Source: Tubulanus polymorphus (lineage: Eukaryota; Animalia; Nemertea). From it: a DNA stretch of 64,000 bases. The stretch covers positions 1,409,355 through 1,473,354 of the forward strand of contig NC_134030.1 of the NCBI RefSeq assembly GCF_964204645.1. The letters run 5' to 3'. Made by a program: the position numbers and the translations under genes. Below the pieces are notes generated by a model. The model saw only the letters and a program-made list of their open reading frames with translations. It did no database searches and was not told the DNA's origin. Positions 1,216-62,000 of this stretch are shown here, piece by piece. The number at the start of each line of letters is the position of its first letter. Within the stretch, counting starts at the first letter, position 1.

Positions 1216-1355
1216 GTTCTTTTTTGATACGGGCTAGAAGTTGAGGGGCCCGCGCCCCGGGTTTTCTTTAAAGCTTTTGGCATTATCTAGAAAAACAAGT
1301 AAAAATATTAAATCATTTGAAAATATATCAGTCAGTCTTATTCTGGTTCAGTGAA

Positions 1356-1840
1356 CTAATTCTCTATATGGTGCATGTAGGGGTCCGGGGACACGACATC
1401 CACTAATTCTCTATATGGTGCATGTAGGGGTCCGGGGACACGACATCCACTAATTCTCTATATGGTGCATGTAGGGGTCCAGGGACACGACATCCACTAA
1501 TTCTCTATATGGTGCATGTAGGGGTCCAGGGACACCACATCCACTAATTCTCTATATGGTGCATGTAGGGGTCCAGGGACACCACATCCACTAATTCTCT
1601 ATACGATGCATGTAGGGGTCCAGGGACACCACATCCACTAATTCTCTATATGGTACGTGTAGGGGTCCAGGAACACCACATCCACTAATTCTCTATACGA
1701 TGCATGTAGGGGTCCAGGGACACCACATCCACTAATTCTCTATATGGTGCGTGTAGGGGTCCAGGAACACCACATCCACTAATTCTCTATACGATGCGTG
1801 TAGGGGTCCAGGGACACCACATCCACTAATTCTCTATATG
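1356..1840 (+). repeat. 47-bp tandem array, ~10.3 copies (left arm; unit B copy 30640-31124)
   Basis: Unit ctaattctctatatggtgcatgtaggggtccagggacaccacatcca; period 1356 to 1403. Confidence 0.97.
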
Positions 1841-2112
1841 TCGAGGGAGCTCTATCAATCAAGGAACAGTCGGCTCACAAGCAGCCCCTGCCCAAAAGGT
1901 TTTGACATTATATTTTCAAAAGCTCTAGTTGTTCTGTAGAACCGAGAGCGGAGCTCTGACTTGTTCCCCTCACTGCTGAGGTCTACTTTCTCTGATTCGC
2001 TGATTGGCTTCTCTTTGGTACATTTTAGATGATCAAAAACTAGAAACTGTCATGCGTTTATTCATTTGGGTATATGTTAAAATTCTTTTACAGTAATGGC
2101 ATATTAGGCACA

Positions 2113-2425
2113 TCAAAACAAATCCGGAATTGTCCCCGAACGAAGTGGCTCCCTCCACTCTCCATCAGTATGCCGGGCCACCACCTCTACCTCTCGGGCA
2201 ACTCGATCCCTCGCCAGCTTTTTGGCGAGTGAACGAGTGACCGCCCGAGATACGGATGGAGAAGCAGGAGGAGCAGGACCCGCACCTGCCCCAGCCCCAC
2301 CACCATCCCTCTTCGGCCTCTTCCTATTTATCCCCTCCCCTTCCTCCCGATTACCTTCGTCAGCCGCACCATCCGCCGGGACCACTCTTGCTCCTCCTCC
2401 CTGCAGAGCCACGACGACCGCAACT
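2113..2425 (-). pseudogene. Inverted paralog of the orphan gene's terminal exon (frame intact; pseudo-exon or paralog exon)
   Basis: Aligns to 21704-22012 with 9 amino-acid differences in ~102 (VAVVVALQGGGARVV...PLRSGTIPDLF*). Upstream exons not found. Confidence 0.7.
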
Positions 2426-3346
2426 GGTACTTTTCGGTTTCTCATGGTTTCCCCACCATCTTTCAAAAGAGAACTATCAATATATCATTAGCTACAAGGA
2501 AATTTTTCAGAAACTTTTTCAGGTCATTCTTTCTTGTATTATTAGCATTTGATTCTCTATATATCGTCAGAACATGGACTCAGAGTGTTTCTTTAATGGT
2601 TAAGAATGTCTCTTTAACCAACATCCCCCTAGCCTGCTTCCTACATATCCCTTCCCTTTCCTCCTGATTACCTTTGATCCCCACTGCCTAGCAGCTAACA
2701 GCTGCTGCTATTTTATCTGGTTTACATGTTTTGCAGATAGTGTCTGTTATGCTATAGTTGTTCTTTTAATCGTTTAACTTCTTCATCTGAAATTTCATTA
2801 TTCTAATTTCAGTTTCACGCAGGAAATGGTTCATGAAAATCTGCATTGAGACTGGGACGAAATGTGCATTGAGACGGATGAAATCTGCATGAACAGAGAT
2901 ATACTTTAAGATCCCCATTTTATCCATCGGAGTGAATGTACATCCACTACTCACAGGTAGAAAACCTACAAACGCTAAACACTCATCCCTGGGCCCTGAT
3001 TCAAAATAAAAAAAAAAAGATTAAATTAAGAATTAACATTTTTATGAATCAGTGATCAGTTTCATAAAATAATTCCTAAATTAATTTTAGGGGTTTATTA
3101 TTTCAGATTGAAATGAATTCTTCATGTTTATGCAATTCTCATTATCTTTCATTGCAGCATTTATATATTCAATTTTAATCATACATGTGAAATATATAAT
3201 GTATTTTCAGGGAAACGTAAACAAGAAAGGAAGGGAAGAAAGAGAAGGGAAGAAAGAGTTGGATGATTAATGCGCACTTATTCTCCATTCCGAATTCCTG
3301 TATTCGACTCTAGGTGATCATCATACGAACGAGATATAGAAAAAAA

Positions 3347-3655
3347 CATTACTGAAGTCATCTCTATTTTTTAGTCTCAATTTGTATTTCTAATTCAATT
3401 TACTAAGTGTGTAAGTCATCATTTGGATAAGTCGTCACATTACTGAAGTCATCTCTATTTTTTAGTCTCAATTTGTATTTCTAATTCAATTTACTAAGTG
3501 TGTAAGTCATCATTTGGATAAGTCGTCACATTACTGAAGTCATCTCTATTTTTTAGTCTCAATTTGTATTTCTAATTCAATTCACTAAGTGTGTAAGTCA
3601 TCATTTGGATAAGTCGTCACATTATTGAAGTCATCTCTATTTTGAAGTCTCAATT
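3347..3655 (+). repeat. 91-bp tandem repeat, ~3.4 copies (unit B copy 32631-32939)
   Basis: cattactgaagtcatctc recurs at 3347, 3438, 3529 and 3620. Confidence 0.95.
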
Positions 3656-6600
3656 AGTATTCAGTTTACTTCAGATAACGTAATTCGGTTTAATCACAAG
3701 TCGTCAACATTATAATCAATGTAACTACAGTGACTACATTATTGTCCTTTTATTGAGAAATTTATGTTAATTTTTGATTTCTGGGATAAATCAAAATTCA
3801 AATGTTATCATTTTTTGTATCAAAAATTGTAAAAAATTGAATAATTTGTGTGCTATTGAAACATTCAGTTATGGGGAGTTTTAAGCTCAGAAAACTTTGA
3901 GCCTGTTTATACAAGTGTTGTAACAAGTGTTGAACAATTCAAAGATCATGTTTTTTATACTTTGTCATGTTAGAAAAAATGTTTTCTAGTATATTGATGT
4001 TTCTAAAAAAACATATGATTCAACTTTAAAAGGCCAAGCCTTCTAATAAAATTAGTTTGTCATATATATATATATATTACTTGGTTATTGTCAAGTTTTT
4101 TAAAAAATATTTTGGTTTTCTCAGCTTTCTCTGGTGGAAATTTCTTCGTGGAATTCCTCTTCTATACAAGTTCCTCCTCAGACTGTTTTTATGCGAGAGT
4201 TTATAACAACCGGATCCTCAGAAAATGGTCGGAGTGCCAAGTCTTCGATTTAAGATCACCAGTCTTATCTGAGACCATAAGTTCACTAGCAAGTTTCACT
4301 AGCGATTCCAACAGCTATAGGATGGAACAGTATTATTATATAGGTCACCACTGTGCAATTGAGCCCAGATCATCAGAAAAAGATAAAAGTGAAGATATGT
4401 GATGGGATTCATTGAAAATTTTGCATATTTAATTAATTCATTGAACTACTTGATTTGTATGATTTATTTTTTGGGAATTTTCGAATTTGTCATCAATAAC
4501 TAGTATATATTTCTTTTCAAGTTGTGAGCGATCTAGTTCTCTGTCGACCCATTGAAAGTGAATCGACTCTGAACTGTAGAACTGGACCCAGGGAGCTGAA
4601 TCTCGCGTGCCACAGCAAGATACAGAGCTCTTCAATGTCTTAACCGTCAGGTGCTGCCCCTAAACAAATCAATAGCGGTAAATCTGTGAACTAACTTATA
4701 GCTCGCTTGCCAGAGTAGAATGATAGCGAGCTGTCTAAAATCTTGAACCGTCTAGTGCTGCCCCTTAATCGATATGTATCGGAAAAGTGAATTTATTACT
4801 CGCATGCCACAGTAGTTGAGTAGTTGGAACATCATGATAGACTCGTTTTTCTGTGCAGCTATAACGGGAACTATTTCAGATCTGATAATGAATATAAACT
4901 CAGTCACAGTTCGATAACAAACGCCGCTGGGTGAAATTGATGTAAACAAATAATCGTGTTGAAATTGAATTTAGTTTAAGATATATTTTCGTGGTAGTTT
5001 TTATTTTCAAGCTGTTTACGTTCACTTCAAATGATGAAACGATGAAACCATATTAAATACATCCCTGTTTTAGTGGGGATTTTGAGTTTTGGTCCTTTCC
5101 GTATCTTCTAGAAACATCAAGTAGAAAGGCATTAACTGAACCCTATGTCTTTAACTTCAGGAGTCTATATGGAGTTTTCGGATGCCTCTTTTCCTCACTT
5201 CTTGCATTCGTCACTATTAGAAATCCGGACAAACTGAATTCAGTTCGACGAGGCCGAAGAACAGAAGATCTGCACTAGCCGCAGGGTTCGTGTTGGCTTG
5301 GATCGGTGGGAGGCAATCAAACCCCGACACGTGAAGATGTATCCTCAAAAATGGATACCGGAACGCTTCTCTGGTTTACGATGATTAGTCTGCAGGGATA
5401 ACTCTTTGGCGGGGCGTGATCGCGTGAATAGCCCAAACTAAACCTTCAGAGTTCACTGTACTACAGCATACAACATCTGATAACTTGCATAATAAAGCGC
5501 GGCGTGCATGAAAAGAATTGTATAAATGCGGGCAAGATTCCGTGCCCTGGCAATCGAACGCCGGAGTGGAGGTATTCCATACACTGGTAGGTGAGTCGGA
5601 GCATAGACTGGTTGCTTGTCCCATAGAGACCGGTAACCAGTCTAGCCACCTCACGATCAGTCTACATTGAAAAACCATTACTGAAATATGGTTGACGGAA
5701 ATATTCATTTCATATCAGATTCTGAAATATTTTCTCGTATTGACTACAAAATTTTTATTATCTTAATAAGATAAATCTGCCAAAGCTCAACAATTTGAAT
5801 TAGTGAAAACCGATGTGCGAAGTCGTCAATTCAGTAGCCCGATAGAGCCCGGTAACCAGTCTAACTGTCAATGTTCATTGCGCGGGAATGAACGGGCAAC
5901 CAGTCTACGATGAAAAATCATTTCTGAAAAATTATGAACGGAGATATTCATTTTACTTTGAATTTTGAATTATCTTATAAAACTGGCAGCCATATTAACC
6001 AAAGTATTAATAGTAAATCTGATAAAATCTAATACCGGTTTTAGAATAGGTGAAAACTGATTTATGTGATGCCGTCGGTTCAGAAGACTGATCCGTAGAA
6101 TCGTTCGCCACTTTCTTCCGGTCCACTTACTTCCGCGTTTGTGATTTGCATACAAGTAGTTTGAATGTTAAATGTATTAAGCCGCGTGTTGATTGGTTGA
6201 GGTCAGTGCGGTTTACTGAACGATGACCAGCTGTCAGCTGATCGAATCATTCGTTTCACAGACATTACGACGTAAGTATATTTTACATCTTTGATCAAAA
6301 ATTGTAGTGTAAAAAAACTCAAAACTAAGGCCTCTATAAATGATCGATTGACTTTAAATGATTACTTTAGCACAGCTCTTGTAGACAATGATTAGGTGTC
6401 ATAGTAGTTTAGCTCGAAAGTGCACATATAAGGTTAATTTTCATCCCTTATTTAGAGACCGAGGTATTGAGCGTCCATTTCAGCCCTTAAAATATCATCA
6501 ACCTACCTCAAACCGACTGTTTTTAAATCCAGCAATAGTTAACTATTGACTCATCATGGATTCGATTCAAAAACAATTTTAGTGATCATAGTGATTCGAA

Positions 6601-6894
6601 ACGTTTGAATTTTTGAAAAACACGAATGCTAAACGACGGATCCGGACTTCGATTGCGGCCCAATGGCAGAGTTGATTTTCTTATTTGGAATTTGAAGATA
6701 TAAATCACTGAAATCAATTGGTTTTCTGAACCAAAATTAAAATTAAGAAGAATTTAGGATGGAGATGTTTGATTTTCATTTTGTCTAAAATGCCGACTTA
6801 AAAATTAATTCAATTGAATCAAATTAATGAATTCATCATTTCACGATATTAGGCCTATAGATAATCAAAGTGTGAATATGAAATCACCTTTTCA

Positions 6895-7903
6895 ATCGCT
6901 GTTTTTGGGTAAGATTGCAGTTTTTAGGTAAGATCGCAGTTTTTAGGTTAGATCGCTGTTTTGAGGTTAGATCACCGTTTTGTGTTAGATTGCGGTTTTG
7001 TGTTAGATCACTTTTTTGTGTTAGATCGCTGTTTTGTTTAAGATCGCTGTTTTAGGTTAGATCGCAGTTTTTAGGTTACATTGCAGTATTTGGGTTAGAC
7101 CACAGTTTTTTGTTAGATCGCAGTTTTTAAGTTAGATCGCTGTTTTGGGTTAGATCAAAGTTTTTGTGTTAGATCGCTGTTTTAGGTTAGATCGCAGTTT
7201 TTGTGTTAGATTGCATTTTTGTGTTAGATCACTGGTTTTTTGTTAGATCGCAGTTTTTAGGTTAGATGGCAGTTTTTAAGTTAGATGGCTGTTTTGTATT
7301 AGATCGCTGTTTTTAGGTTAGATTGCTGTTTTTAGGTTAGATCGCTGTTTTGTGTTAGATCGCTGTTTTTAGGTTAGATCACAGTTTTTGTGTTAGATCA
7401 CAGCTTTTAGGTTAGATTGCTGTTTTTAGGTTAGATGGCTGTTTTTAGGTTAGATCCCTTTTTTTCTTAGATCGCAGTATTTAGGTTAGATCGCTTTTTT
7501 TGGATTAGATCGCAGTTTTTGGGTTAGATCGCAGTTATTGTGTTAGATCGCTGTTTTTGGGTTAGATCGCTGTTTTTGGGTTAGACGGCAGTGTTTAGGT
7601 TAGATTGCAGTTTTTAGGTAAGAACAATGTTTTTCTGTTAGATCGCAGTTTTTTTGTTAGATCGCAGTTTTTAGGTTAGATCGCAATTTTTTGTGTAAGA
7701 TAGCAGTTTTTTGTTTGGTCGCTGTTTTTGGGTTAGAAAGCTGTTTTTGTGTTAGATTGGTGTTTTTAGGTTAGATCGCTATTTTTGTGTTAGATCGCTG
7801 TTTTTGGGTTAGATGGCTGTTTTTGGGTTAGATGGCTGTTTTTGGGTTAGATGGCTGTTTTTGGGTTAGATCGCTGTTTTTGGGTTAGATCGCTGTTTTT
7901 GTG
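6895..7903 (+). repeat. 18-20-bp minisatellite (gttagatcgctgtttttgg-like)
   Basis: Strand-asymmetric G/T-rich array, about 1 kb. Confidence 0.95.
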
Positions 7904-7954
7904 TTTTTGTCAATCATCATATCAAGATTTGCAATCCCAGTTGCCTTCAAGTTT

Positions 7955-8721
7955 CATATAGAGAATTAGTGGATGTGGTGTCCCTGGACCCCTACATGCA
8001 CCATATAGAGAATTAGTGGATGTGGTGTCCCTGGACCCCTACATGCACCATATAGAGAATTAGTGGATGTGGTGTCCCTGGACCCCTACATGCACCATAT
8101 AGAGAATTAGTGGATGTGGTGTCCCTGGACCCCTACATGCACCATATAGAGAATTAGTGGATGTGGTGTCCCTGGACCCCTACATGCACCATATAGAGAA
8201 TTAGTGGATGTGGTGTCCCTGGACCCCTACATGCACCATATAGAGAATTAGTGGATGTGGTGTCCCTGGACCCCTACATGCACCATATAGAGAATTAGTG
8301 GATGTGGTGTCCCTGGACCCCTACATGCACCATATAGAGAATTAGTGGATGTGGTGTCCCTGGACCCCTACATGCACCGTATAGAGAATTAGTGGATGTG
8401 GTGTCCCTGGACCCCTACATGTACCATATAGAGAATTAGTGGATGTGGTGTCCCTGGACCCCTACATGCACCATATAGAGAATTAGTGGATGTGGTGTCC
8501 CTGGACCCCTACATGCACCATATAGAGAATAAGTGGATGTGGTGTCCCTGGACCCCTACATGCACCATATAGAGAATTAGTGGATGTGGTGTCCCTGGAC
8601 CCTTACATGCACCATATAAAGAATTAGTGGATGTGGTGTCCCTGGACCCCTACATGCACCATATAGAGAATTAGTGGATGTGGTGTCCCTGGACCCCTAC
8701 ATGCACCATATAAAGAATTAG
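7955..8721 (-). repeat. 47-bp tandem array, inverted, ~16.3 copies
   Basis: Reverse complement of the 1356-1840 unit. Confidence 0.97.
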
Positions 8722-8921
8722 TTCACTGAACCAGAATAAGACTGACTGATATATTTTCAAATGATTTAATATTTTTACTTGTTTTTCTAGAAGATGCCAA
8801 AAGCAACAAAAAAAACACGGGGCGCGGGCCCCTCACATTCAAGCCCGTATAATAAAGTAAGTACAAATTTACTGCTTCCATGCTTATTTATTCATCCCAT
8901 ACTTAGTATTTTGTACCCCTG

Positions 8922-9028
8922 GGTCCAGTTTCACAAAAAGGATTAACGCCTAAATCGATTTAAGATAAACTGAATTAATGAAGAAATTAAATCGATTTAA
9001 GAGTTAAACCTGTTTGTGAAACTAGGCC
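8922..9028. mobile_element. Small MITE, PIF/Harbinger-like (unit B copy 40130-40236)
   Basis: TIR ggtccagtttcacaaa / tttgtgaaactaggcc flanked by CTG on both sides (3-bp TSD). Confidence 0.7.
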
Positions 9029-9280
9029 CTGAATTGCATCTAGAATGAAAAAAAAAGAAAAAAAAATATTGAAAATAACGTTGGTGAAATATTTCTGGAT
9101 CTCTCTGGATTTCTGCTCAATGCATCGTTTAGTAAAATATCGATATTCTCTAAAAGTAAAGATATAAGAATAAAAATATTGTATTGAATCGTGATTAGTT
9201 ACTGTATGCGCTGCTAGTTGTTGCCCAACCCATAGCCTCATTTCTCTCCATTCTAAATTTGCATTGTTTAACATTGTCTG

Positions 9281-9879
9281 GTCGCTATGGAATCTATTTA
9301 TTTAAGTTTCTTTGTGGTATCCATGGCAACAGTAACGTTTAGGTAGTGGCACCAATTATGGGTCCCAACGTTCCCATGGCGATACATGAGAACATTTATC
9401 CTATTTTTGACCTTCATGACGTAAGATGGTAGTGAGTCGATGACGTCATTTTCGTCTCACCACTAATGAAAAAAAAAATGAAATGAAAAAAAAGGAAAAA
9501 ATCGTTAGAATTACGTTTATAAAATTTTTCTCGATCGGCTAAATGTATTGTTCCATTAAATATCGACATTCTCTAAAATTATAGGCATCAATATCAAAAT
9601 GATGATACAGCAGACTCCGCTTAACTCTGTTCTATTTGGACCATTAATTAACCGAATACCAACTTTTTAAAATTTTAGGATTTTTACGTTAAGGATCAGA
9701 AAATGTGTATGCAATTTCAACCGGGTACCGAGTAGGGTGGCCGAGTCTACTGTAGTCTGCTGCCCCCTCGAATCCATTACCTTATTATCTCTCAATTTGC
9801 ATTGTTTGACCTCGTCTGGTTGCTATGGAAACTATTTAGTTATATCAGGAACGGTTTTTTCGAGGTAACCAGTGGCAAC
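9281..9879 (+). promoter_or_regulatory. Cluster of 5 RFX X-box-like motifs and 2 CRE motifs upstream of the orphan gene
   Basis: gtcgctatggaatc 9281, gtatccatggcaac 9317, gttcccatggcgat 9370, gttgctatggaaac 9819, gtaaccagtggcaac 9865; tgacgtaa 9417, tgacgtca 9441. Confidence 0.6.
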
Positions 9880-10029
9880 AGTTAACAGACGTGTCCATCC
9901 TAGAGATAAACTGTCTGATTTCACAGCCACATCCGTCCTGGAGATAAACTGTTAGATAAACTCTGATTTCGCGTCTGTCCTATTTCTTGTCATTGTATGA
10001 ATATGTTTTCTCTTTTATAGGGTACAGCG

Positions 10030-10033
10030 CAGC

Positions 10034-10073
<40 letters not shown>

Positions 10074-10086
10074 GCAACAACAACAA
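10030..10086 (+). repeat. (CAA)n microsatellite in the first recognised exon, upstream of and in frame with ATG 10102
   Basis: About 19 CAA/CAG triplets; shorter in unit B (~41237-41281). Confidence 0.95.
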
Positions 10087-10101
10087 AAATTTAATATTTC
10101 T

Positions 10102-13087: not shown

Positions 13088-13118
<31 letters not shown>

Positions 13119-22052: not shown

Positions 22053-22109
22053 GTGCCTTGAACGCATGAGTCGTTCATGCGCGCCTAATATGCCTTCACT
22101 GAAAAAAAT
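22029..22109 (+). other. ~35-bp-stem hairpin spanning the stop codon (unit B 53418-53498)
   Basis: tttcagtgaagg-g-atattagg...tgaacg / loop catgagt / cgttca...cctaatat-g-ccttcactgaaa. Confidence 0.8.
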
Positions 22110-22449
22110 CAACTATAACATGTACCACATATTTTTTGATTTAATTTTAGTCCAATTCCACAATTATTTCGGCTTACAATAGTGTCTTCAATTCTTTAAA
22201 GCCCAAAGCACCTTTTTGACTCAACATCCAGTATGAAGGTGGCCGGGAATCGGGCCTGTTTTCTTCCATTTTTGTATCCCGCCCAGCATACTGGTTGTTG
22301 ACTCGAAAAGGTGCTCGCTCTGGGAGCTTATCAAAGGCAGGTGATGGGAAAGGTGCCATCACACACTCTCCTTTGATAAGTTTCCTAGAGTGTCACGGGC
22401 TTTAACGGGTTGAATTCACTATAATACCAATTTTCCAAAATCAATTTAA

Positions 22450-40487: not shown

Positions 40488-41086
40488 GTCGCTATGGAAA
40501 CTATTTATTTAAGTTTCTTTGTGGTATCCATGGCAACAGTAACGTTTAGGTAGTGGCACCAATTATGGGTCCCAACGTTCCCATGGCGATACATGAGAAC
40601 ATTTATCCTATTTTTGACCTACATGACGTAAGATGGTAGTGAGTCGATGACGTCATTTTCGTCTCACCACTAATGAAAAAAAAAATTAAATGAAAAAAAA
40701 GGAAGAAATCGTTAGAATTACGTTTATGAAATTTTTCTGGATCGGCTAAATGTATTGTTCCATTAAATATCGACATTCTCTAAAATTATAGGCATCAATA
40801 TCAAAATGATGATACAGCAGACTCCGCTTAACTCTGTTCTATTTGGACCATTAATTAACCGAATACCAACTTTTTAAAATTTTAGGATTTTTACGTTAAG
40901 GATCAGAAAATGTGTATGCAATTTCAACCGGGTACCGAGTAGGGTGGCCGAGTCTACTGTAGTCTGCTGCCCCCTCGAATCAATTACCTTATTATCTCTC
41001 AATTTGCATTGTTTGACCTCGTCTGGTTGCTATGGAAACTATTTAGTTATATCAGGAACGGTTTTTTCGAGGTAACCAGTGGCAAC
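40488..41086 (+). promoter_or_regulatory. RFX/CRE motif cluster, unit B copy
   Basis: All motifs retained; the first is gtcgctatggaaac, closer to consensus. Confidence 0.6.
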
Positions 41087-41296
41087 AGTTAACAGGCGTG
41101 TCCGTCCTAGAGATAAACTGTCTGATTTCACAGCCACATCCGTCCTAGAGATAAACTGTTAGATAAACTCTGATTTCGCGTCTGTCCTATTTCTTGTCAT
41201 TGTATGAATATGTTTTCTCTTTTATAGGGTACAGCGCAGCAACAACAACAACAACAACAACAACAGCAACAACAACAACAAAAATTTGATATTTCT

Positions 41297-50200: not shown

Positions 50201-53200
50201 AAATTATGATATTATATGGATTGCATGCTGTGTGGAAGAAGTTTTCAAAATTATTTAGGAGCTTATTATAATTTGAATACATGAATTGAGAGCAATTTGA
50301 AATGTGTTGATATCTGAAAGTGTTTCCATTGACTTCACTCATTCACCTGATGAAGCTTCTATACATTAGTACCCAAAGCTTGTGTGTCAAATAAACTAGT
50401 TACACGTCCTATAAAGTATTACTTGTCTCGTTATATATTCTAAACCCCAGTTAACAATTCCAGTAAGTCAGGTTTAGGGAATAGATATTTAAACCTTCAG
50501 ATGAAACCGATGTGATACAATTCCAGTAAGTCAGGTTTAGGGAATAGATATTTAAACCTTCAGATGATACCGATGTGATACAATTCCAGTAAGTCAGGTT
50601 TAGGGAATAGATATTTAAACCTTGAGATGAAACCGATGTCATACAATTCCAGTAAGTCAGGTTTAGGGAATAGTTATTTAAACATTCAGATGAAACCGAT
50701 GTAATACAATTCCAGTAAGTCAGGTTTAGGGAATAGATATTTAAACCTTGAGATGATACCGATGTGATACAATTCCAGTAAGTCAGGTTTAGGGAATAGA
50801 TATTTAAACCTTGAGATGAAACCGATGTGATACAATTCCAGTAAGTCAGGTTTAGGGAATAGATATTTAAACCTTCAGATGATACCGATGAATTTAGCAA
50901 TTTTGAATGAATTAAACCAATATGAGATTTCGATCCTAAGAATATTTGAAGCTTGTGTTTAACGTTACTAAATATTAATATTATATAAAGCTAGAAGGAC
51001 ACGAGGGTATCCATTTTTTTGCCCGATCGCAACGATTCAATTCGCTGGTGAATTTATACGCCCGATACGAGTGGGTACCGATCTATTTATAAATCGGCCA
51101 TCACGGTGATTTCGTCGCCCGCCGACATTAAACATGTTCGATATTTACGCCGGTGTTCAGGTCACTTGTTAATTCGCTCGTCTTGTCGGCAAGCTTAAAA
51201 AGATTTAGAAAAAACTACAAATTCTCATTCCTGAATGAACTGGATTCATCTGGGTTCAGTTTCATGAGACTCAGTTCAAACTGCTCTAGAATTTGAGTTT
51301 GTAATTAATGTATGTGATTATAATGAATTGTATTTTTTGTTTTACAGCTTTGGCATTTCGGTTAAGTCGTGCGTTCCGGCGGGAGGAGTTTGTACGTTTG
51401 TTTCTCCCGGAGTGTAAGTAGTTTAACTATTTTCATACAATATCATTTAGTGTGACGTATGTCACTGATAATCAAAATCTAATAATAACTGTTGATCCGT
51501 AGTATTAACATTGTGCAATTGAAATCCTATAGTTGTTTTTAGAAAGGATAAATGGCGCCATCAATGTGACAATCGATTGTAAAGTTTAAGAAATGAATGT
51601 TTAACCTCGCCGAGTACCAGAATTCTTAACCGTAGCATCGAAACCATTCGACTTGTTGTTTAATGTATTTCTCTCTATTTTTATTTTACAGTGATGATCA
51701 TTTTACAAGACTGCCCGTTTGGGGACTTGGTGGGGGAATTCAAAAGAAACTTGGTTCCCGATAGGATACCACCACCGGTTAATCCTATGTCGCCCGCTGC
51801 TGCCCCTCCCCAAAATCCGATAAATTCGCCTCAGCAGCGGCCTGTCAGACAGCCGCCCCCGGCCGCCACTCGTTCGTCAGACAGAGTCCGGGGACGGCTG
51901 TTTGAAGGAGATCTGACGGAGGTAAGAATCTTTATTTGTTTTCATATTTTATTCAGGATATCAGTTGAAGTTCAGCAAATAAATTACCAGACCTGTAAAC
52001 AGAAGAGTAGTCATAAATTTCCATTTGCGGGTAAAACCCCATAGTCGAAAACCTTCGGTTATTGATCTATATCTGCTTAAGACCAATGGTTGTACACACG
52101 AGTGCGAAAACTTATCGCTCAAACTTTGATTGTATCCATGGTAACGCGTACAGTATACTATGCGTGACTTACCGTTTCCTATCACTGAATACAATACTGT
52201 TTTAGACCATGAGCGCCATCTGCGGCGGTCATAACGGACTGAGTGGTGATTGGCTGAAATGCTCGTCTACCGTGGTGACGATTATTCGGTGTTACACGTG
52301 CAGCAGACACGTCTCTGAATATCTAACATTTGATTGTTGTAACTCATCGGGAAAAATATGTTTATGAGTCGATTTTTTGTCGAAATTTTGTTCGGCAGAA
52401 AATTGGCTGCGTACGTCAAGAAGGCGGCTGATATTTGTATCGTGTGACCCCTCGTCCCGGTAATATGCCGACCCACGTACACCTGAGACCAGTTGCAGAG
52501 CTTAGAATTAAGACCGTTTTAAGACCAACTTAGTTCTATAGCCAATCTAATAACTTAAGACCAGTCTTTAGATTTAAGACCACTTTTGGACTTAAGTCTT
52601 GACCATGGAATCGGCCCCAGATGCTTATTCCGCTGTATTGGATGCTGACATGCTCGTGTCTTCCAGCAATGTTGTTATTCACCAAAAATATCATGTTTTG
52701 TTCGAATAACACGATTCATCTGAGTCTGGGTTTAACGGATGACACGTTCAAACAGAACTACGAAATCAATATCAGAAGTCCTTTTATATTGAAACGGTCC
52801 CAGAAGTCCCTGTTATAATGGGTACTTTTTCAAAAAAAGTAACGAGAACTCCGATGGCTTTCCGTATCGGTAAAAACTAACTATTTCTATGAGCGTCACT
52901 CGTAGATTTACCGAAACGCCACCTTGTGACACGATATCCTAACTACGTATAGGTGTTTTATTTGTTGAATCGCTGGTTTCTCATTCTCATTTTTTATACT
53001 TGTGTTTAATTTTATACTAAACAAATTTTTCACTTTTTCTCTTTACAGACACGACCACCGCCAAAAAAAACTAGAACAAAAAGGAAAAGAAAAGTTGCGG
53101 TCGTCGTGGCTCCGCAGGGAGGAGGAGCAAGAGTGGTCCCGGCGGATGGTGCGGCTGACGAAGGTAATCGGGAGGAAGGGGAGGGGATAAATAGGAAGCG

Positions 53201-53441
53201 GCCGAGGAGGGATGGTGGTGGGGCTGGGGATGGTGCGGGTCCTGCTCCTCCTGCTCCTCCATCCGTATCTCGGGCGGTCACTCGTTCACTCGCCAAAAAG
53301 CTGGCGAGTGAACGAGTGGCCCGAGAGGTAGAGGTGGTGGCCCGACATACGGATGGAATGTGGGAGGAGCGGCTTCGTTCGGGGACAATTCCGGATTTGT
53401 TAACTGATTTAAAAAATATTCTTTCAGTGAAGGGATATTAG
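41297..53441 (+). CDS. Spliced orphan gene, unit B copy (296 aa)
   Basis: join(41297-41311,41721-41759,42136-42162,44054-44092,44303-44384,51348-51413,51692-51921,53049-53441). All splice sites and exon lengths preserved. Confidence 0.75.
46215..47422. mobile_element. Non-autonomous TIR DNA transposon, hAT-like ends with 5-bp TSD
   Basis: ctgaa|CAGGGTTC...GAACCCTG|ctgaa inserted in the 40-bp array; subterminal gcttgaa repeats at both ends. Confidence 0.85.
49285..49981 (+). pseudogene. DIRS-type RT remnant, unit B copy
   Basis: Same motifs; YLDDWL in ORF 49821. Confidence 0.85.
50454..50890 (+). repeat. 63-bp tandem array, ~7 copies
   Basis: Homolog of 18743-19493. Confidence 0.97.
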
Positions 53442-56400
53442 GTGCCTTGAACGCATGAGTCGTTCATGTGCGCCTAATATGCCTTCACTGAAAAAAAATC
53501 AACTATAACATGTACCACATATTTTTTGATTTAATTTTAGTCCAATTCCACAATTATTTCGGCTTACAATAGTGTCTTCAATTCTTTAAAGCCCAAAGCA
53601 CCTTTTTGACTCAACATCCAGTATGAAGGTGGCCGGGAATCGGGCCTGTTTTCTTCCATTTTTGTATCCCGCCCAGCATACTGGTTGTTGACTCGAAAAG
53701 GTGCTCGCTCTGGGAGCTTATCAAAGGCAGGTGATGGGAAAGGTGCCATCACACACTCTCCTTTGATAAGTTTCCTAGAGTGTCACGGGCTTTAACGGGT
53801 TGAATTCACTATAATACCAATTTTCCAAAATCAATTTAATTTCTTTCAGGCCATTCTTTTTCCATGTTTTTCTGGTACATGTTATGGTTGATTTCCATTT
53901 TCGAAAATCCGGAATTGAAGCCGTTCGAAGTCGGGGGGATGGTGGTGGGGTTGGGTTAGTTTAGGGTTCCTCTCTGATTACCTTCTTTAGCTCATCATCC
54001 GTGCAGGTGGCGCTTGCTCTTCTAGCCGGTGTTCCCTGGGGTAAACATTTTAAATTTAAAAAATCAAAAATAAAAAAAAAATTATAAAATCTTTAAAAAT
54101 CTCATCTCATTTCATCCAATTTATTTATTTGCGGGTGCGATGCCTATCGCACCCATTCATGTCATCCATCAAAAAAAAAATTAAAACTAAAAACGAAAAA
54201 AAATATAAAAATTTAAAAAATCTCATCTCATTTCATCCAATTTATTTGCGGGTGCGATTCCTATCGCACCCATTCATGTCATTCATCCAAAAAAAATAAA
54301 AAACGAAAAACGAAAAAAAAATATAAAAATTAAAAAAATCTCATCTCATTTCATCCAATTTATTTATTTGCGGGTGCGATCCATATCGCACCCATTCATG
54401 TCATTCATCAAAAAAAAATTAAAACTAAAAACGAAAAAAAATATAAAAATTTAAAAAATCTCATCTCATTTCATCCAATTTATTTATTTGCGGGTGCGAT
54501 TCCTATCGCACCCATTCATGTCATTCATCCAAAAAAAATTTAAAAACTAGAAATTAAAGTTCTAAGTTTGTTGTTAGATTCTATTGAAAGAACGTTGTAA
54601 AGTTCTTAATTTGTCGTAAAAAACGTTAGAAAAAAAGAACTTCTTAAAGTTCTCAATCTGCCGTAAAATGCAATTGAAAAGATTATAACTCACATGAAAA
54701 TTAAAAAGATAAAATAATTGATAAATAATCATTAATAAAAATTGAACTTTGGTCTCGCAATGTTTCCCCGTTATGCATTTTTTACTCGTCGTCAAACATC
54801 GGCAGCTCATCGTCGATACTCGCAGCTCGATACACACCAGCAGCTTGTCGTCGATACACACCAGCAGCTTGTCGTCGATACACACCAGCAGCTCGATACA
54901 CACCAGCAGCTTGTCGTCGATACTCACCAGCAGCTCGATTCACACCAGCAATTCGTCGTTGATACACACCAGCAGTTCGTCGTCGATACACACCAGCAGT
55001 TCGTCATCGATACACACCAGCAGTTCGTCGTCGATACACACCAGCAGCTCGATACACACCAGCAGTTCGTCATCTATACACACCAGCAGTTTGTCGTCGA
55101 TACACACCAGCAGTTTGTCGTCAATACACACCAGCAGTTCATCGTCGATACACACCAGCAGTTCGTCGTCGATACACACCAGCAGTTCGTCGTCGATACA
55201 CACCAGCAGTTCGTCGTCGATACACACCAGCAGTTGGATACACACCAGCATCTCGATACTCAGCAGCAGTTTGATACACACCAGCAGCTCGTCGATACAC
55301 ACCAGCAGTTCGTCGTCGATACACACCAGAAGCTCGATACACACCAGCAGCTCGTCGTCGATACACACCAGCAGCTCGATACTCACAGCTCGATACACAC
55401 CAGCAGCTCGTCGATACACACCAGCAGCTCGATACTCACCAGCAGCTCGATACACACCAGTAGCTCGTCGTCGATACTCACCAGCAGCTCGATACACACC
55501 AGCAGCTCGTCGTCGATACACACCAGCAGCTTGATACCAAAACAGCTTTTAGCTGGTGAAAACCTACCCCCCATCGGGGTTAAACATGATCAAGCTATTA
55601 TTCTAGGAATATAACTGTTGCAAGGGAAGTTAAGATTCATTAACCTAAACTTGATACAAAGAGATTATTGCTAATTATGAATTTCAAGGGTTTAAAAACT
55701 GATTTAAAAATCTTGAAAGACGCTCGGTCTCACTAGAGATTTTCATCTTAAAGATTTATTGTCCTCTTACTATTGTTTAGGTGATCTATAATTTGGTAAA
55801 TGCTGCTGTTGGAAAGATGCCAGAAGAAAGTTGATTCGTGCACATCTTCACTTCACGTATTTATTGCACAAGGCGCCGACTTGCACCTGCACTACACCAT
55901 TCACACTTCACCACTTCTGCATCTTTATCAATTAATTCTGGCATCTATTTGAAAATTACTTTAAACATCAGATCTCAAACTGAAACATTGAGGTATTGAA
56001 TTTCAAACTGAAATATCGAGCTATCGAATCTCGATCTCAAATGTTTACTGGAAGCCATATTTGATGTTGTATTATTCATCATAGATTGTTTAGTGTTTTC
56101 TGGCATATGCGGGCCATTTAAGATGGTCAGATAAATTCCCCGGTGGAAAATATATCTCGTGGAAGAGTCATGGAAATGAAAAATATCTTATGTAGATGTG
56201 AAGTTAGGAACCTTGCAACAGTTTTTCCACCTGAGGATAATTTGATATAAGATGAATCAGTTATTGGATCATTTAACTGAAGCCAAATATAGTGAAAAAT
56301 CTTAGTAAAAATTTGTCTCAAACTACAATTGAAAGGACTTATCACAGTTCTAATTCGACTCTAGGTGCGTTCAGAAGAACTTCTTAACAGTGAAAAAACT

Positions 56401-57667
56401 TGACTAAAAATCAGGAATCGACCCTGTTCATTGATAAGATTTGATCTTTATTTGAAGATTAAGAATCAAACTCGCTAATTCACAATTTTTGGTAGTAAAT
56501 ACTGTTGATCCATCATATTCGCAGCCCCCCGTGGGCTTACCAATCCATCATACGTGCAGCCACCTTGCGCTTACCAGTCTATCATACTCGCAGCCCCAGT
56601 GGGCTTACCAATCCATCATACGTGCAGCCACCTTGCGCTTACCAGTCTATCATACTCGCGGCCCCAGTGGACTTATCAATCCATCATACGTGCAGCCCCC
56701 GTGGGCTTACCAGTCCATCATACTCGCAGCCCCAGTGGGCTTATCAATCCATCATACGCGCAGCCCCCTTTGGGCTTATCAATGAGAAACATTCAGACAT
56801 AGTAACCGTTTTACTCGTGCTTTTCAACGACACCGTCTTATCACTCTGTAGAACGGCGATCGCAGCGTGAAATTTGTAATCGTATTTCTCCGCTGAATTT
56901 GAATATTTGATACGCGACGCGCGTGATTGAAGCTTTGTTTATGTTCGTGCTTGCCGCGATGAATTGTCATAAATATATCCTCCGTACAGGAGGACCATGA
57001 AAAGGTTTGAAGGGATCCCTAGTTAGCGCTTGTCCAGGTTTGGCTCTGGACCCGCTTGTTCGACTAGGCATCTTGTTGGAAATTTTGTCGACTGAAACTT
57101 CCGTAACTTTCGTTTTAGACCTCGCTGCTCGAAGAGCCGTTGCTGCGTCGGTTACTGTCATGCTTCGGCACAATTTTGAACGATTGTTGGAAACCGCCTT
57201 GTTCTTCTGCTGCAGATGTTGACTGTGTCGTACCCATAGTAAAGTAGCCATCTTAAATTCAAATAGTTTCGGACATTTGAGGTCCTCATCAACTCCGAGT
57301 CTTCATTCAACTGCAGTTACTGCCATTTGCCAGTGTCTGATGTAGAAGTTCTGACTTGACATTTTGATTTTCAGAATTAAGACCTTTTTTCTATTAAAGA
57401 AATTAGATATTGGTTAAAAAGAAATTAGATATTGGTTAAAAAACAAGTGAATAATTGTTTGTAAGAAAAAAGAAAATCATGTTAGAAAAAAATATAGATG
57501 TAAAAAAATATAGATGTAAGAAAAAAAAAGTATATTGTAAATCGACGAGACGACAGAACCAGCATCAGCAACAACAACATCAGAGGAAGCAGTAACCAGT
57601 TATTTATCAGCTCCATAAATTACTGAAACGAAATCCACAACTCGGATACCAACCACACTCAACTCTA

Positions 57668-59057
57668 GAATTGTTCATACAACTGTCAACATGGAGTTCA
57701 TCTCACAAGCAAATTAGGTAATTATCTTATGAAATTGTATGAATTGCCAATTTAACATTTTTGCATTTCAAGTAGGTGTAATTGAATGTTTGTCAACCTT
57801 ACTCTTATAAAACTGTGTTAACCGTTGAACAGGATTCTAAGACTGTGCAGAAAACCCGTTATCGCTGCTTTGCAGCTATAATTATCTGATAAATTAGTAT
57901 GGAATGCCAATTTTACATTTTTGCATTTAAGTTTAAGTGAGTTTAAAATCACGTTTCATTTGTTGTTTATTTTGTCTTTTCAGTTTTCAATTTGCCGAGA
58001 TCAGTCGTCAAAAACTGTTACAACGGAAACTAAGATAACAAAGACTTGATTTGGCAAAGATTGAAGAAATCCTGCGAAAAGATTATTCATGAATTGTTCA
58101 TACAACTGTCAACATGGAGTTCATCTCACAAGCAAATTAGGTAATTATCTTATGATTTTGTATGAAATGCTAATTTTTACTCGTTAATTTTTTACAAATA
58201 AGTTGACTTTGAAATCTTTATTAATTTCTTGTTTATTTTGTTTTTTCAGTTTTCAATTTGCCGAGATCAGTCATCAAAAACTGTTACAACGGAAACTAAG
58301 ATAACAAAGACTTGATTTGGCAAAGATTGAAGAAATCCTGCGAAAAGCTTATTCATGAATTGTTCATACAACTGTCAACATGGAGTTCATCTCACAAGCA
58401 AATTAGGTAGTTATCTTATGATTTTGTATGAAATGCTAATTTTTACTCGTTAATTTTTTACAAATAAGTTGACTTTGAAATCTTTATTAATTTCTTGTTT
58501 ATTTTGTTTTTTCAGTTTTCAATTTGCCGAGATCAGTCATAAAAAAACTGTTACAACGGAAACTGAGATAACGAAGACTTGATTTGGCAAAGATTGAAGA
58601 AATCCTGCGAAGAGATTATTCAAGAATTGTTCATACAACTGTCAACATGGAGTTCATCTCACAAGCAAATTAGGTAATTATCTTATGATTTTGTATGAAA
58701 TGCTAATTTTTACATTTAAGTTTAAATGAGTTTAAAATCATGTTTCATTTGTTGTTTATTTTGTCTTTTCAGTTTTCAATTTGCCGGATCAGTCGTCAGA
58801 AAACTGTTACAATGGAAACTAAGATAACAAAGACTTGATTTCGGCAAAGATTGAAGAAATCCTGAGAAGAGATTATTCATGAATTGTTCATACAACTGTC
58901 AACATGGAGTTCATCTCACAAGCAAATTAGGTAATTATCTTATGATTTTGTATGAAATGCTAAATTTTACTCGTTATTTTTTTACTAATAAGTTGACTTT
59001 GAAATCTTTATTTATTTCTTGTTTATTTTGTCTTTTCAGTTTTGAATTTGCCGAGAT
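57668..59057 (+). repeat. ~266-bp exon-plus-intron repeat, unit B, 4 full units and partials
   Basis: Marker at 57668, 58091, 58357, 58624 and 58881. Confidence 0.9.
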
Positions 59058-62000
59058 TCACATGTAGCAGATATAATGGAATTAAGTATTGAGAACCGCA
59101 ACTTAACAATAAACCGGATCAACTTAATATAGTGCTGAGGACCAAAAATAAAGGATAAACCCGACCAGTGTAATTCAGTGTCGAGAACCGCAGTTAAACG
59201 ATGAACCCGACCAGTGTAATTCAGTGTCCAGAACCGCAGTTAAACGATGAACCCGACCAGTGTAATTCAGTATTGAGAACCACAATTAAACGATGAACCC
59301 GACCAGTGTGATTCAGTGTCGAGAACCACAATTAAACGATGAACCGGACCAGTGTAATTCAGTGTCCAGAGCCGCAGTTAAACAATGAACCGGACCAGTG
59401 TAATTCAGTGTCGAGAACCGCAATTAAACGATGAACCGGACCAGTGTAATTAAGTGTCGAGAACCACAATTAAACGATGAACCGGACCAGTGTAATTCAG
59501 TGTCGAGAACCGCAATTAAACGATGAACCGGACCAGTGTAATTAAGTGTCGAGAACCACAATTAAACGATAAACCGGACCAGTGTAATTCAGTGTCGAGA
59601 ACCGTAATTAAACGATGAACCGGACCAGTGTAATTCAGTTTCGCAATAACCGCAATAAAACGATAATCTGGAGTTGTAATAGTGTTGTGTATTTGCGTAG
59701 TGGATCAAGTGGAAGGATTTTAAGTGTATTTGGTGACTTTAATTCGTTCGCATCCAACAGAATCAACAAAGACATTACAAAAAACGACAAAAAATGATTG
59801 AATGTAAATGCATTGAATTTAGGTTTGATGATCAAGATAATCACTGATCAAGATTGACAGTTATAATCCATAATTGTTGAACTTGATCAGAGATTTTCAA
59901 GATCGATTTTAAGGTGATTCAGAAGTTTAAATCTGATGTTTTAATCTCTGGGACTCAGATATTAAATCAATAGATTTTTACTGCTGAATGATCTTCATGT
60001 ACAGATGAGCTACAATTGTTCCTAGTGTGTTCTGTTAAGACTGATTAAAGGGTGGAAAAACTTGACTCAAATTCAAATTGAGTCGAGTTTTTCCAAGATA
60101 ATCTCTGATCAAGATCGGCAGTTACTGGTATAATCCACAATTGTTGAACTTGATTGGTGATTTTCAAGGTCTGTTTTAAGGTGATTCACAAGTTTAAATC
60201 TGATGTTTGAATCTCTGGGTTCCAGATATTAAATCAATAGATTTTTACTGCTGAATGACCTTCGTGTTCAGATAAGCTACATTTGTTCCTAGTGTGCTGT
60301 TAAGAAAGGGTGGAAAAACTTGACCCAAATTCAAATTGAGTCGAGTTTTTCCAAGATAATCTCTGATCAAGATCGGCAGTTATAATCCATAATTGTTGAA
60401 CTTGATTGGAGATTTTCGAGAACTGTTTTTAAGGTGATTCAGAAGTGTGAATCTGATGTTTTAATCTCTGGGTTTCAGAGATTAAATCAATAGGTTTTAA
60501 CTTCTGAATCACTTCGGGTTTTGGTAAGTTAAAGTGTTTCCTATTGTAATCTGTTAAACTGATTAAAGGGTGGAAAAACTTGATTCAAATTAATAATCTG
60601 AATCAAGTTTTCCAATGATAATCCGCGATCAAGTTCGGCAGTTATAATTCATAACTGTTGAACTCAATTCACAATTAAATGAACTGTTTTAAGGTGATTC
60701 AGAAGTATAAATCTGATGTTTTAATCTCTGGGTTTCAGAGATTAAATCAATAGGCTTTACTTCTGAATCACTGTTAGGTTTTGATAAGTTGTAAGTTGTT
60801 CCTATTGTTTAATGAATTGGTAGAAATTCTATTTTTAGGTGACAGGTCAAATAGATTAGAACAGTAATTTATGCAGAGGTTGAATTAATTTAATGTTTGA
60901 TATACCAAAGAATGGTTTATTGTGAAGATTTAATTAAAATCTTAAATAAAGAGTTGTTCAATTTCATAAATGTTTTGTTTTCGATGAAGTTTTTTTCATT
61001 TTCTGGATTTGAGGAATTTGACTTTAAACACATCGGTGGATTCAGCACAGTTCTGTGGACACAGTTTTTGGACCGAGACACAGCTCAAGACCCAGTTACA
61101 AGTTCAACTGGACTCCATCCCAAAAAACCCTGGGCCCTTCAAACCTTTAAGTAAGATGCTCACTTACAGATTCATAAAATTGACCCTTATTATCTTGTCA
61201 TCTGCAGCACCATCTCAGAGGCTTAAACCAAGAATTTCTTGTAATGTTCAACAAATGTGAATTACATTAAGTAATTTTTGAGATCGACTAACACCAGTAT
61301 TGAGTTTTTTCTAAATCACAGTCTACTTATTTTATATTCATCCACGATTTCATAGCTCTTTAACTATTCAACCCTTTCCCTGATGGGCCCTGGCCCCAAT
61401 TGCTGAACCCAGTTCTCCAAGTCTAACTTCTGGGTTTAATGGTTTATCAGAGAATTAATGGATTAATTGGAAATAATCTAACAATCAATAAAGTTTAAAA
61501 TTAATTATTTGACATATCGTAATTGATTTTGTTCGCCACAACGCCTTTCTCATCAGGATTATAGCATTTTACTTTCTATGGGTTTTTAAAGGTAAGTTTT
61601 CAAAGGAAAGACAGAATGTCCGAATATACGTCCGGATCCGCCTTTATATGCCTCATTCCGATTCTGCTCATTTGCATATATTTTCAGCAAGTGGAAATTC
61701 CCCGAATTCCAAGATGGCGGCGACCATGATATATTAAATAACAACTATTTTGGGCCAAATCAACGCTTTCTCAAGCTCAATATGAGATTTCCCGAGCGCA
61801 AATGTAACTTAAAAAGAAAATAATCCTGTTGGTTAGTTATATTTTTGATAATTAAATTTATTTGCAAAGTTAAAGTGAAGTTCCAATGACAGATAGAAAC
61901 GTTGAAAGACTGGGGTAATTGAAACATGCCCTAGCCACTGGCCACTATGAACAGTCCTAAACGTTTTGATCCAACTGCACCAGTTGAGGTCACCAACTGT

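Follow-up and report, generated by a model that had tools for sequence, protein, structure and literature searches.

A head-to-tail array of a putatively lineage-restricted gene in the ribbon worm Tubulanus polymorphus, with inverted gene fragments that are probably co-amplified relics

The 64,000-nucleotide stretch of DNA analysed here (the window) sits within a head-to-tail array of ∼0.7 Mb, composed of 30-kb units, on a chromosome of the ribbon worm Tubulanus polymorphus. The best explanation, to which we give a probability of about 0.6, is a tandem gene array with one protein-coding gene in each minisatellite-dense unit of 30-36 kb, in which the inverted pieces of the gene are passively co-amplified relics. 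The structure of the array is itself of an ordinary kind; what is new here is the architecture of the unit, the probable debris origin of the inverted pieces, a larger number of differences in exons than in introns, and the palindromes within a conserved last exon.

On contig 6 (C6), the chromosome of the window, 17 intact forward last exons of the gene lie between 1.077 and 1.752 Mb. Eleven of the intervals that separate them measure 29.9-36.2 kb and five, which correspond to long units, 58.8-64.4 kb; the short and long unit types follow each other in irregular order. One further intact last exon, inverted, is found at 0.65 Mb. The original prediction had called for a search for the unit elsewhere in the genome, and this search recovered related arrays, for a total of three contigs and, counted from the assembly alone, 34 intact last exons genome-wide (7+3 copies on contig 3 and 6 on contig 8).

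It had also been proposed that the window holds at least three tandem units with a base-identical junction. The tandem arrangement is confirmed, as two full units, one unit tail and one unit start are present (Table 1); the junction is near-identical, with 598 of 600 bases matching, and strict identity does not hold. Both unit junctions fall within 3.8 tandem copies of a 260-bp repeat, and therefore the "junction" marks how the array is phased and is no breakpoint. Neighboring units are 96-99% identical. By self-BLAST, units A and B align in collinear blocks of 91-98.7% identity, with an offset that drifts from 29283 to ∼31700 because their minisatellite lengths differ, and positions 60001-64000 match C6:1214331-1218343 with 98.7% identity. 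Neither the window nor the 200 kb of genome sequence retrieved contains an N gap. Rfam and tRNA scans of the window gave no matches and, the gene apart, no ORF of the unit has a family match in Pfam (five other ORFs and the relic ORF, nothing above noise).

Table 1. Features of the window, with positions counted from its first letter
Feature	Position	Strand	Remarks
End of preceding array unit (260-bp boundary satellite copies)	1..366	+	window 1-384 = unit end and next unit's start, C6:1214554-1214934, 98.4%
Array unit A, short type, 29.3 kb	367..29649	+	self-BLAST; ∼30% tandem repeats in 13 arrays
Inverted 5'-end relic, unit A	1221..1840	-	first-exon relic (1283 down to 1221) and 47-bp minisatellite (1355-1840)
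Inverted last-exon relic, unit A	2117..2435	-	93.7% identity to 21695-22012; frame open; first arm of stop-codon hairpin absent
47-bp minisatellite, 16 copies, directly upstream of first exon	7955..8722	+	
Gene copy A, nine exons, 344 aa	8794..22052	+	8794-8856, 10021-10116, 10526-10564, 10941-10967, 12831-12869, 13080-13161, 19952-20017, 20296-20525, 21660-22052
Intron-1 motif cluster, unit A	9317..9832	.	X-boxes 9317, 9819; CRE 9441; motif matches
Perfect 20-bp palindrome within coding last exon	21887..21932	+	-56 kcal/mol, z -9.8
Stop-codon hairpin, ∼33-bp stem over TAG stop (22050-22052)	22033..22105	+	-46 kcal/mol, z -7.6
Possible very old decayed inverted last-exon fragment, marginal	22515..22632	-	weak inverted matches, two in collinear order
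Array unit B, short type, 31.0 kb	29650..60645	+	self-BLAST
Inverted 5'-end relic, unit B	30505..31124	-	inverted-repeat pair; first-exon open frame
Inverted last-exon relic, unit B counterpart	31401..31719	-	
Gene copy B, nine exons, 340 aa	40002..53441	+	40002-40064, 41228-41311, 41721-41759, 42136-42162, 44054-44092, 44303-44384, 51348-51413, 51692-51921, 53049-53441
Intron-1 motif cluster, unit B			X-boxes 40488, 40524, 41026; CRE 40648; motif matches
Unit C start (long type)	60646..61495	+	98.7% identity to 367-1215; continuation as at C6:1214975
Opening 2.5 kb of ∼28-kb long-unit insert	61496..64000	+	matches C6:1215836-1218343, 98.7%

One intact spliced gene per unit had been predicted, and the copies bear this out: in all seven examined in full (two in the window and five more) the frames are open and every splice site is GT-AG, the predicted proteins are 340-347 aa long, and each indel among the seven is a multiple of 3. 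The earlier model of eight exons needed correction, as a ninth exon lies upstream at 8794-8856. Processed copies were sought with genome-wide patterns for the intron-less junctions 10116/10526 and 20525/21660, which returned none (one chance-level match with 3 mismatches). A copy in which the first and second exons are fused (C6:1239870, minus strand) was considered as a product of cDNA; this origin is not proven, the join being imprecise by ∼14 nt.

What does the gene encode? In the protein of copy A, a polyQ tract is accompanied by S/T-P sites and by NLS-like stretches rich in K and R; the C-terminus is helical, and the pI calculated from the 8-exon, 296-aa version is 10.5. The product thus looks like a lineage-restricted, basic and largely disordered protein of nuclear type, with a presumed role in the nucleus. 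Protein searches used individual exons, which were joined only to check the frame and to count substitutions. In Pfam, exons 6, 7, 8 and 9 gave nothing above noise, and the protein has no similarity to an HMG box or to protamines; ESM Atlas returned no usable match for exons 8 and 9. The last exon had no match in a library of 1.84 billion representative proteins, a search in which relatives of this 130-aa query below ∼50 bits would go unreported. Within the genome, contigs 11, 9 and 8 have weak paired matches to exons 8 and 9, with 43-51% identity and comparable spacing (C11:2084115-2085075 and C9:1580486-1581450 are examples). AlphaFold2 modeled the last exon alone with a pLDDT of 57, and this value is too low for a fold search.

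The divergence among copies tells how the arrays have evolved. Intron 7 differs by 0.6% within contig 6, by 1.5% between contig 6 and the proximal contig-3 array, and by 6.3% between contig 6 and the distal contig-3 genes. In the tree of this intron, a fully supported clade consists of the distal contig-3 genes alone, the proximal contig-3 copies group together (83/91), and the contig-6 copies are not resolved; no two of the 28 sequences compared are identical. Copies are therefore closer within an array than between arrays, as in concerted evolution. The last exon behaves differently from the adjacent intron: its divergence from the distal contig-3 genes is 1.6% versus 6.3%, with pN 0.007, pS 0.02-0.04 and 98% amino-acid identity. 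The last exon is under purifying selection. The contig-8 copies of this exon retain 87-99% amino-acid identity and are still open, and the differences in exon 3 (10526-10564) and exon 7 (19952-20017) are mostly synonymous. Exon 8 (20296-20525) shows pN equal to or higher than pS in comparisons between arrays. Divergence between copies is greater in the N-terminal and middle exons than in the introns that flank them, a pattern for which simple homogenization does not account.

Within the last exon, a core of 244 nt is invariant across 28 copies, and it contains the palindrome listed in Table 1. The stop-codon hairpin of the original prediction is found at the end of the exon and recurs in 7/7 contig-6 copies checked; in two relic copies it is weakened by a 7-nt deletion. 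The predicted RFX/CRE cluster in intron 1 is likewise present as motif matches above expectation: the X-box pattern has 9 matches versus 0.58 expected, and the TGACGTCA pattern 4 versus 0.92. In the eight copies of the intron checked (two in the window and six in the left block), there are always two or three X-boxes and one CRE, with three X-boxes everywhere except unit A. RFX and CREM sites are typical of mammalian spermatid genes.

The most unusual elements of the unit are the inverted gene fragments. Two inverted copies of the last exon had been claimed for each unit. The copy at 2117-2435 is solid, and its equivalent occurs in every contig-6 unit. The other one is marginal: its parts match at 70% (22577-22632) and 79% (22515-22543), over 57+29 nt, with a local alignment score no better than that of shuffles. 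Close to the solid relic lies a 620-nt inverted repeat, whose arms 1221-1840 and 8237-8856 are 95% complementary; the former carries an inverted first exon, with a minus-strand open frame beginning MPKA at 1283, and this inverted promoter-side fragment points away from the last-exon relic. A foldback-transposon origin of the repeat was considered and rejected, as the arm end is not dispersed in the genome and is confined to these arrays.

We read the inverted last exon as a co-amplified relic, that is, as probably inert debris copied along with the unit and no silencing device. This reading follows from its faster change between units, the lack of a nearby partner arm, the inverted first exon and minisatellite alongside, and the failure to detect it beside most family members on other contigs. 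Between units, the relics differ at up to 12 of 306 bases and by deletions of 3 and 9 nt, and the working exon at no more than 3 of 393; both 9-nt deletions fall within short direct repeats. All relics carry a common set of fixed differences from the working exon, with a pN/pS of 0.4-0.9 between the two. The sense exon nearest to the relic at 2117-2435 belongs to the upstream unit, at a distance of 9.3 kb (19.3 kb for the one in its own unit), with 90-95% identity, and the exon has no local two-arm inverted repeat of the kind that hpRNA loci require. On contig 3, inverted copies were detected neither in the short units of the array nor by the three distal genes, which are intact; on contig 8, the sole nearby opposite-strand pieces lie ∼20 kb from one gene. 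Complementarity to the gene does exist, since the relic shares 119 of 331 21-mers with the exon and matches it perfectly over up to 85 nt, and, if transcribed, it could be a source of targeting small RNAs. The 8/8 copies examined have an open frame, with indels only in multiples of 3; it is therefore still conceivable that the relic acts as coding sequence or as RNA.

The long units contain more of this material. Further along, their insert holds a scrambled, inverted and broken gene copy, which spans exons 1-8 and has a premature stop, and they carry two relic copies that both face the same way. A second gene in the insert, a 184-aa ORF that occurs once per long unit, is doubtful; this ORF is open on contig 6, is disrupted on contig 3, and has no family match. 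Three ORFs of the insert gave only noise in Pfam.

How might such a unit have arisen? The backwards last exon, the backwards first exon and the promoter-side minisatellite may together represent one fragment of an older and more compact gene-to-gene junction, which would have been inverted into the unit before amplification and then copied passively, the long units retaining more of the inverted, broken gene copy. The units would have multiplied head to tail, most likely via unequal crossing-over, with gene conversion keeping them similar and selection conserving the C-terminal exon.

The other explanations have to be measured against the same data. That haplotypes or collapsed reads were misplaced in tandem during assembly is hardly credible: the 96-99% identity of adjoining units could also come from high heterozygosity, but 17 distinct copies stand on one contig, all 28 intron-7 sequences differ, minisatellite lengths are specific to units, exon variants are mosaic, two unit types alternate irregularly, the window and the 200 kb retrieved are free of gaps, and related arrays lie on two other contigs. 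Unlikely, too, is a young macrosatellite devoid of function, amplified for structural reasons in a repeat-prone region, with frames open only through recency. Such an origin would suit an intron divergence of just ∼0.6% within the array, a unit that is 30% minisatellite, and the frequent partial and broken gene copies; no protein like the last exon occurs in the collection of 15 billion proteins that underlies the library searched, a weak point against transcription that is valid only if the transcriptomes of this species are included there. However, where the intron has diverged by 6% the last exon is still 98% identical in amino acids, its pN far lower than its pS, the contig-8 copies remain open at 87-99% identity, differences in exons 3 and 7 are mostly synonymous, and relics within the same DNA do gain stops and deletions.

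The window had been singled out as a possible conflict amplicon, and the descriptive part of this claim stands, as it is a large head-to-tail amplicon, in an invertebrate, of a seemingly lineage-restricted gene with inverted fragments. The gene would then be a germline driver, or a participant in a dosage race, restrained by small RNAs from the inverted exon copies or the last-exon hairpins, in the manner of Stellate/Su(Ste) or Dox/Nmy. We consider this quite unlikely. In its favor are a high-copy, lineage-restricted gene for a basic, nuclear-type protein, the inverted exon fragment with long perfect matches in every contig-6 unit, the 20-bp perfect palindrome and 33-bp stop-codon hairpin of the last exon, the X-box/CRE cluster in intron 1, and an exon 8 with pN ≥ pS between arrays. 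Yet four points tell against a driver and its suppressor: the change of the relic between units, its pN/pS, the missing local partner arm (the sole nearby candidate reaches 70-79% over <60 nt), and the intact contig-3 genes, beside most of which no inverted copy was detected. In addition, the relics have drifted apart, both from one another and from the exon, and the relic lies upstream, not downstream, of the inverted promoter-side fragment. The broader idea of a spiralian germline conflict or dosage-race locus, where small RNAs from the relics or from the two last-exon hairpins restrain an amplified nuclear protein, is decidedly improbable; if it held, the invariant 244-nt core would record selection on both RNA and protein.

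A tandem gene array carrying passive relics is thus the reading we retain, and it has its own interest. On the sex chromosomes of flies and mammals, large tandem arrays of lineage-specific genes are a familiar feature and are tied to germline conflict; to our knowledge, they have hardly been described in spiralians. The ribbon-worm locus provides a clean and well-assembled example, with 34 intact copies, three contigs and two unit types. With it one can ask whether such amplification accompanies germline expression, whether conflict drives it, and in what way the copies are shaped by gene conversion and by selection.

Several known systems invite comparison. Drosophila FB elements have foldback inverted repeats with arms built of tandem subrepeats. 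The arms 1221-1840/8237-8856 resemble them: they flank 6.4 kb, and each combines a unique outer end with 47-bp subrepeats on its inner side. They differ in that one arm ends outward in the first coding exon of the gene, and no transposase was found. In Stellate/Su(Ste) of Drosophila melanogaster, as in the nemertean, a protein-coding gene amplified in tandem occurs together with homologous antisense-oriented sequence. Su(Ste), however, is a separate Y-linked array in which a transposon insertion drives antisense transcription and piRNAs result, whereas the antisense-oriented piece of the nemertean is a single 319-bp exon fragment inside each unit, and none was detected beside most of the contig-3 family members.

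The Dox family of Drosophila simulans, with its Nmy and Tmy suppressors, is similar in that a basic nuclear-type gene family expands and inverted gene fragments occur; the nemertean protein differs in having neither HMG box nor protamine similarity. An hpRNA locus is a local inverted repeat whose arms, of high complementarity, belong to one transcript, the source of Dcr-2-dependent siRNAs (PMC10317233). In contrast to Nmy and Tmy, the nemertean arms would lie 9-19 kb apart and be 90-95% identical.

Further parallels are ampliconic or tandemly arrayed lineage-specific gene families, among them mammalian X/Y ampliconic genes such as Slx/Sly, and gene-bearing macrosatellites such as D4Z4/DUX4 and CT47. 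The nemertean array differs from them in its host, which has no known sex chromosomes, in a protein without recognized family, and in a unit that is ∼30% minisatellite and comes in short and long forms. The shared features are many copies of at least 97% identity, a unit of tens of kb with one small gene, adjacent near-identical copies with intact ORFs (units at 96-99%, 34 last exons, and 7/7 full genes intact), concerted evolution within arrays and divergence between them, frequent broken partial copies, and a position of the contig-6 and contig-3 arrays 0.4-1.8 Mb from the contig starts.

Self-BLAST of the window (G000:C6:1409355-1473354, on contig 6 of an assembly of 268 Mb in 77 contigs) aligns units A and B in collinear blocks of 91-98.7% identity, with an offset that rises from 29283 to about 31700 owing to the differing copy numbers of the many minisatellites. 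The DNA gives no sign of being human or viral. As the tail of a preceding unit and the start of a unit C stand beside these two (see the table), the window touches four units, two of them complete, in keeping with the at least three tandem units of the original prediction. The junction, announced there as base-identical, is nearly so, although not strictly: 598/600 bases are shared between A|B and B|C. Both sit within a 260-bp tandem repeat, and in a head-to-tail array neither is a true junction. Unit C leaves the pattern of the short units at 61496, and from there is 98.7% identical to the first part of a ~28-kb insert at C6:1215836. Tandem repeat makes up ~30% of the unit; in the remainder, none of the ORFs matched a family, and tRNA and Rfam searches found nothing. 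A 122-bp A-rich tandem repeat of 5 copies occupies 22667-23285, starting ~600 bp past the stop codon; each copy can pair in a perfect stem of 9 bp (GGGTGCGAT...ATCGCACCC) and carries several AATAAA/ATTAAA signals.

Units, inverted pieces and weak paired matches to the gene (bare positions refer to the window; C8, C9 and C11 are contigs of the same assembly)
Feature	Position	Strand	Remark
Tail of preceding unit	1-366		
Unit A	367-29649		
Unit B	29650-60645		
Start of unit C	60646-61495		repeat of 367-1215 (self-BLAST)
Inverted last-exon relic, unit A	2117-2435	minus	
Inverted last-exon relic, unit B	31401-31719	minus	
Second inverted piece	1221-1840		47-bp minisatellite and first exon
Weak exon 8/9 pair	C11:2084115-2085075		
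Weak exon 8/9 pair	C11:2002371-2003332		
Weak exon 8/9 pair	C9:1580486-1581450		
Weak exon 8/9 pair	C8:13961557-13962462		about six more pairs besides the four listed

A genome-wide count with 20200-22100 as probe (the exon 8-exon 9 stretch with a short flank on either side) gives 17 forward copies on contig 6, at 1.077-1.752 Mb, separated by eleven intervals of 29.9-36.2 kb and five of 58.8-64.4 kb; the order of long and short units shows no fixed period. This array region is repeat-prone and lies 1.0-1.8 Mb into a 23-Mb contig. A 200-kb block to the left of the window (C6:1060001-1260000), read directly, holds five more short units and one long, and ~350 kb left of the main array there is a mirrored long unit at 0.65-0.69 Mb (C6:650000-688000), with its gene on the minus strand and the insert pieces on the plus strand. 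Contig 3 carries an array of 7 copies (0.42-0.74 Mb) and, at 1.25-1.33 Mb, three genes that have diverged more, and contig 8 six diverged genes at 15.1-16.3 Mb. A search elsewhere in the genome, as had been proposed, thus finds copies on contigs 6, 3 and 8, with 34 full-length open last exons in all. Beyond these, exons 8 and 9 have weak paired matches at about ten loci on contigs 11, 9 and 8 (43-51% identity, E about 1e-5), with exon order kept and similar spacing, which suggests an older, wider, dispersed family related to the amplified gene. At C8:15158588-15172302, six head-to-tail copies of the last exon's first 91 codons, 2.7 kb apart and mostly with open frames, adjoin an intact family member at C8:15155183.

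The claim of one intact spliced gene per complete unit is borne out by seven fully read copies, all with open frames and GT-AG sites. The eight-exon model at 10102-22052 keeps its consensus splice sites and open joined frame, but the exons number nine: an upstream exon at 8794-8856, with 21 codons starting MPKA and a GTAAGT donor, is in frame with 10021-10116, a polyQ stretch holding the former start codon. The predicted protein has 340-347 aa in all seven copies, whose indels are all multiples of three. It is basic (pI 10.5 for the 8-exon, 296-aa version) and rich in P, R, A and S/T-P, with KR clusters of nuclear-localisation type; helix is predicted, at low confidence, for the last ~55 residues only. 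Pfam, searched exon by exon, returned no family, the last exon found no match among 1.84 billion representative proteins, and the exon queries none in the ESM Atlas. The RFX/CRE cluster holds up as a set of motif matches (9 X-boxes observed vs 0.58 expected, with CRE alongside): 2-3 X-boxes (three except in unit A) and one CRE fall within 540 bp of intron 1 in 8/8 copies, a recurrence that adds no independent support because the units are near-identical.

How do the parts of this gene evolve? Mean pairwise divergence of intron 8 (between exons 8 and 9), the last exon and exon 8 is, respectively, 0.6%, 0.4% and 1.9% within contig 6, 1.5%, 0.6% and 3.7% between contig 6 and the proximal, 7-copy contig-3 array, and 6.3%, 1.6% and 1.8% between contig 6 and the three distal contig-3 genes. 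The intron tree places the distal genes in their own clade with full support and clusters the proximal copies (83/91); it does not resolve the contig-6 copies. In the last exon, pN is 0.007 vs a pS of 0.02-0.04, and positions 112-355 (window 21771-22014, 244 nt) are invariant in all 28 copies compared from three arrays, next to an intron that diverges by up to 6.3%; either the exon is under constraint or it is converted between arrays, or both hold. The stop-codon hairpin is confirmed and occurs in 7/7 contig-6 copies checked, and within the invariant stretch lies a perfect 20-bp palindrome (21887-21932; -56 kcal/mol, z -9.8) that codes a near-symmetric peptide around LAKKLA. Exon 8 departs from the intron genealogy, with pN ~ pS. 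In the seven complete gene copies, the small exons have diverged further than the introns that flank them, as in 10526-10564, where 9 of 39 nt segregate vs 3/408 and 6/370 in the introns on either side. In 10526-10564, 19952-20017 and 20296-20525 the differences fall in clusters and are for the most part synonymous. An old two-haplotype block, which runs from the end of 19952-20017 through the next intron (of 278 or 1782 nt) into the start of 20296-20525, includes one of these clusters. The cluster in 10526-10564 is confined to the exon, with CpG decay and short tracts of conversion from diverged paralogues as candidate causes.

As for the two inverted terminal-exon copies predicted per unit, the relic is solid, whereas 22515-22632 is marginal. 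Every contig-6 unit has an inverted last-exon copy. Against the working exon, these copies have a set of fixed differences in common; all are without the first arm of the stop-codon hairpin, and their pN/pS against the exon is 0.4-0.9. Between units they differ at up to 12/306 bases, plus 3- and 9-nt deletions (both 9-nt deletions fall within short direct repeats); the working exon between the same units differs at no more than 3/393. The inverted copies behave as relics. A second inverted piece, absent from the original prediction, forms a 620-nt inverted repeat of 95% with 8237-8856. Along the minus strand, the last-exon relic is followed by 277 bp, the minisatellite and the first-exon relic, the arrangement expected of a compact gene-to-gene junction in an older array. 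Long units have more of the inverted copy: exons 1-8, scrambled and with duplications, exon 8 being interrupted by a premature TAG. They also carry the last-exon relic in two direct copies, of which the short-unit relic looks to be a recombinant, and some eleven cassettes that resemble the first exon. A 184-aa ORF (L018:1369-1920; C6:1231369-1231920, minus strand), long for DNA with 39% G+C, occurs once per long unit; the broken inverted exon 8 lies ~450 bp upstream of it. The frame stays open in the long units of contig 6 and is broken in both contig-3 copies, and Pfam gives no match.

Taken together, the data favor, with a probability of roughly 0.6, an ampliconic tandem array evolving in concert, with a functional, unrecognised gene of nuclear type and inverted pieces that are co-amplified debris. 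The unit would have been amplified head to tail, the inverted pieces being copied along. An assembly artefact is scarcely credible against 17 mutually distinct copies. A young macrosatellite without function is an unlikely account, given that the last exon is conserved in diverged copies. More doubtful still is the conflict amplicon of driver/suppressor type, the candidate reading of the original prediction: hpRNA loci are defined by a local two-arm hairpin (PMC10317233), which the array lacks. On contig 3, no inverted copy was detected in the short units or beside the distal genes, and around the contig-8 genes the sole opposite-strand pieces are those at 16.33 Mb, ~20 kb away from one gene; a gene paired with an inverted copy is thus characteristic of one array and not of the whole family.

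A literature search for genome papers on Tubulanus polymorphus found none on this topic, and we know of no such array described in Nemertea. What is new here is how the unit is built, how the relics behave and how exon and intron divergence compare. With Stellate/Su(Ste) and Dox/Nmy, the sole likeness is an amplified gene accompanied by inverted fragments of itself; the present structure belongs with the ampliconic, or macrosatellite, gene arrays.
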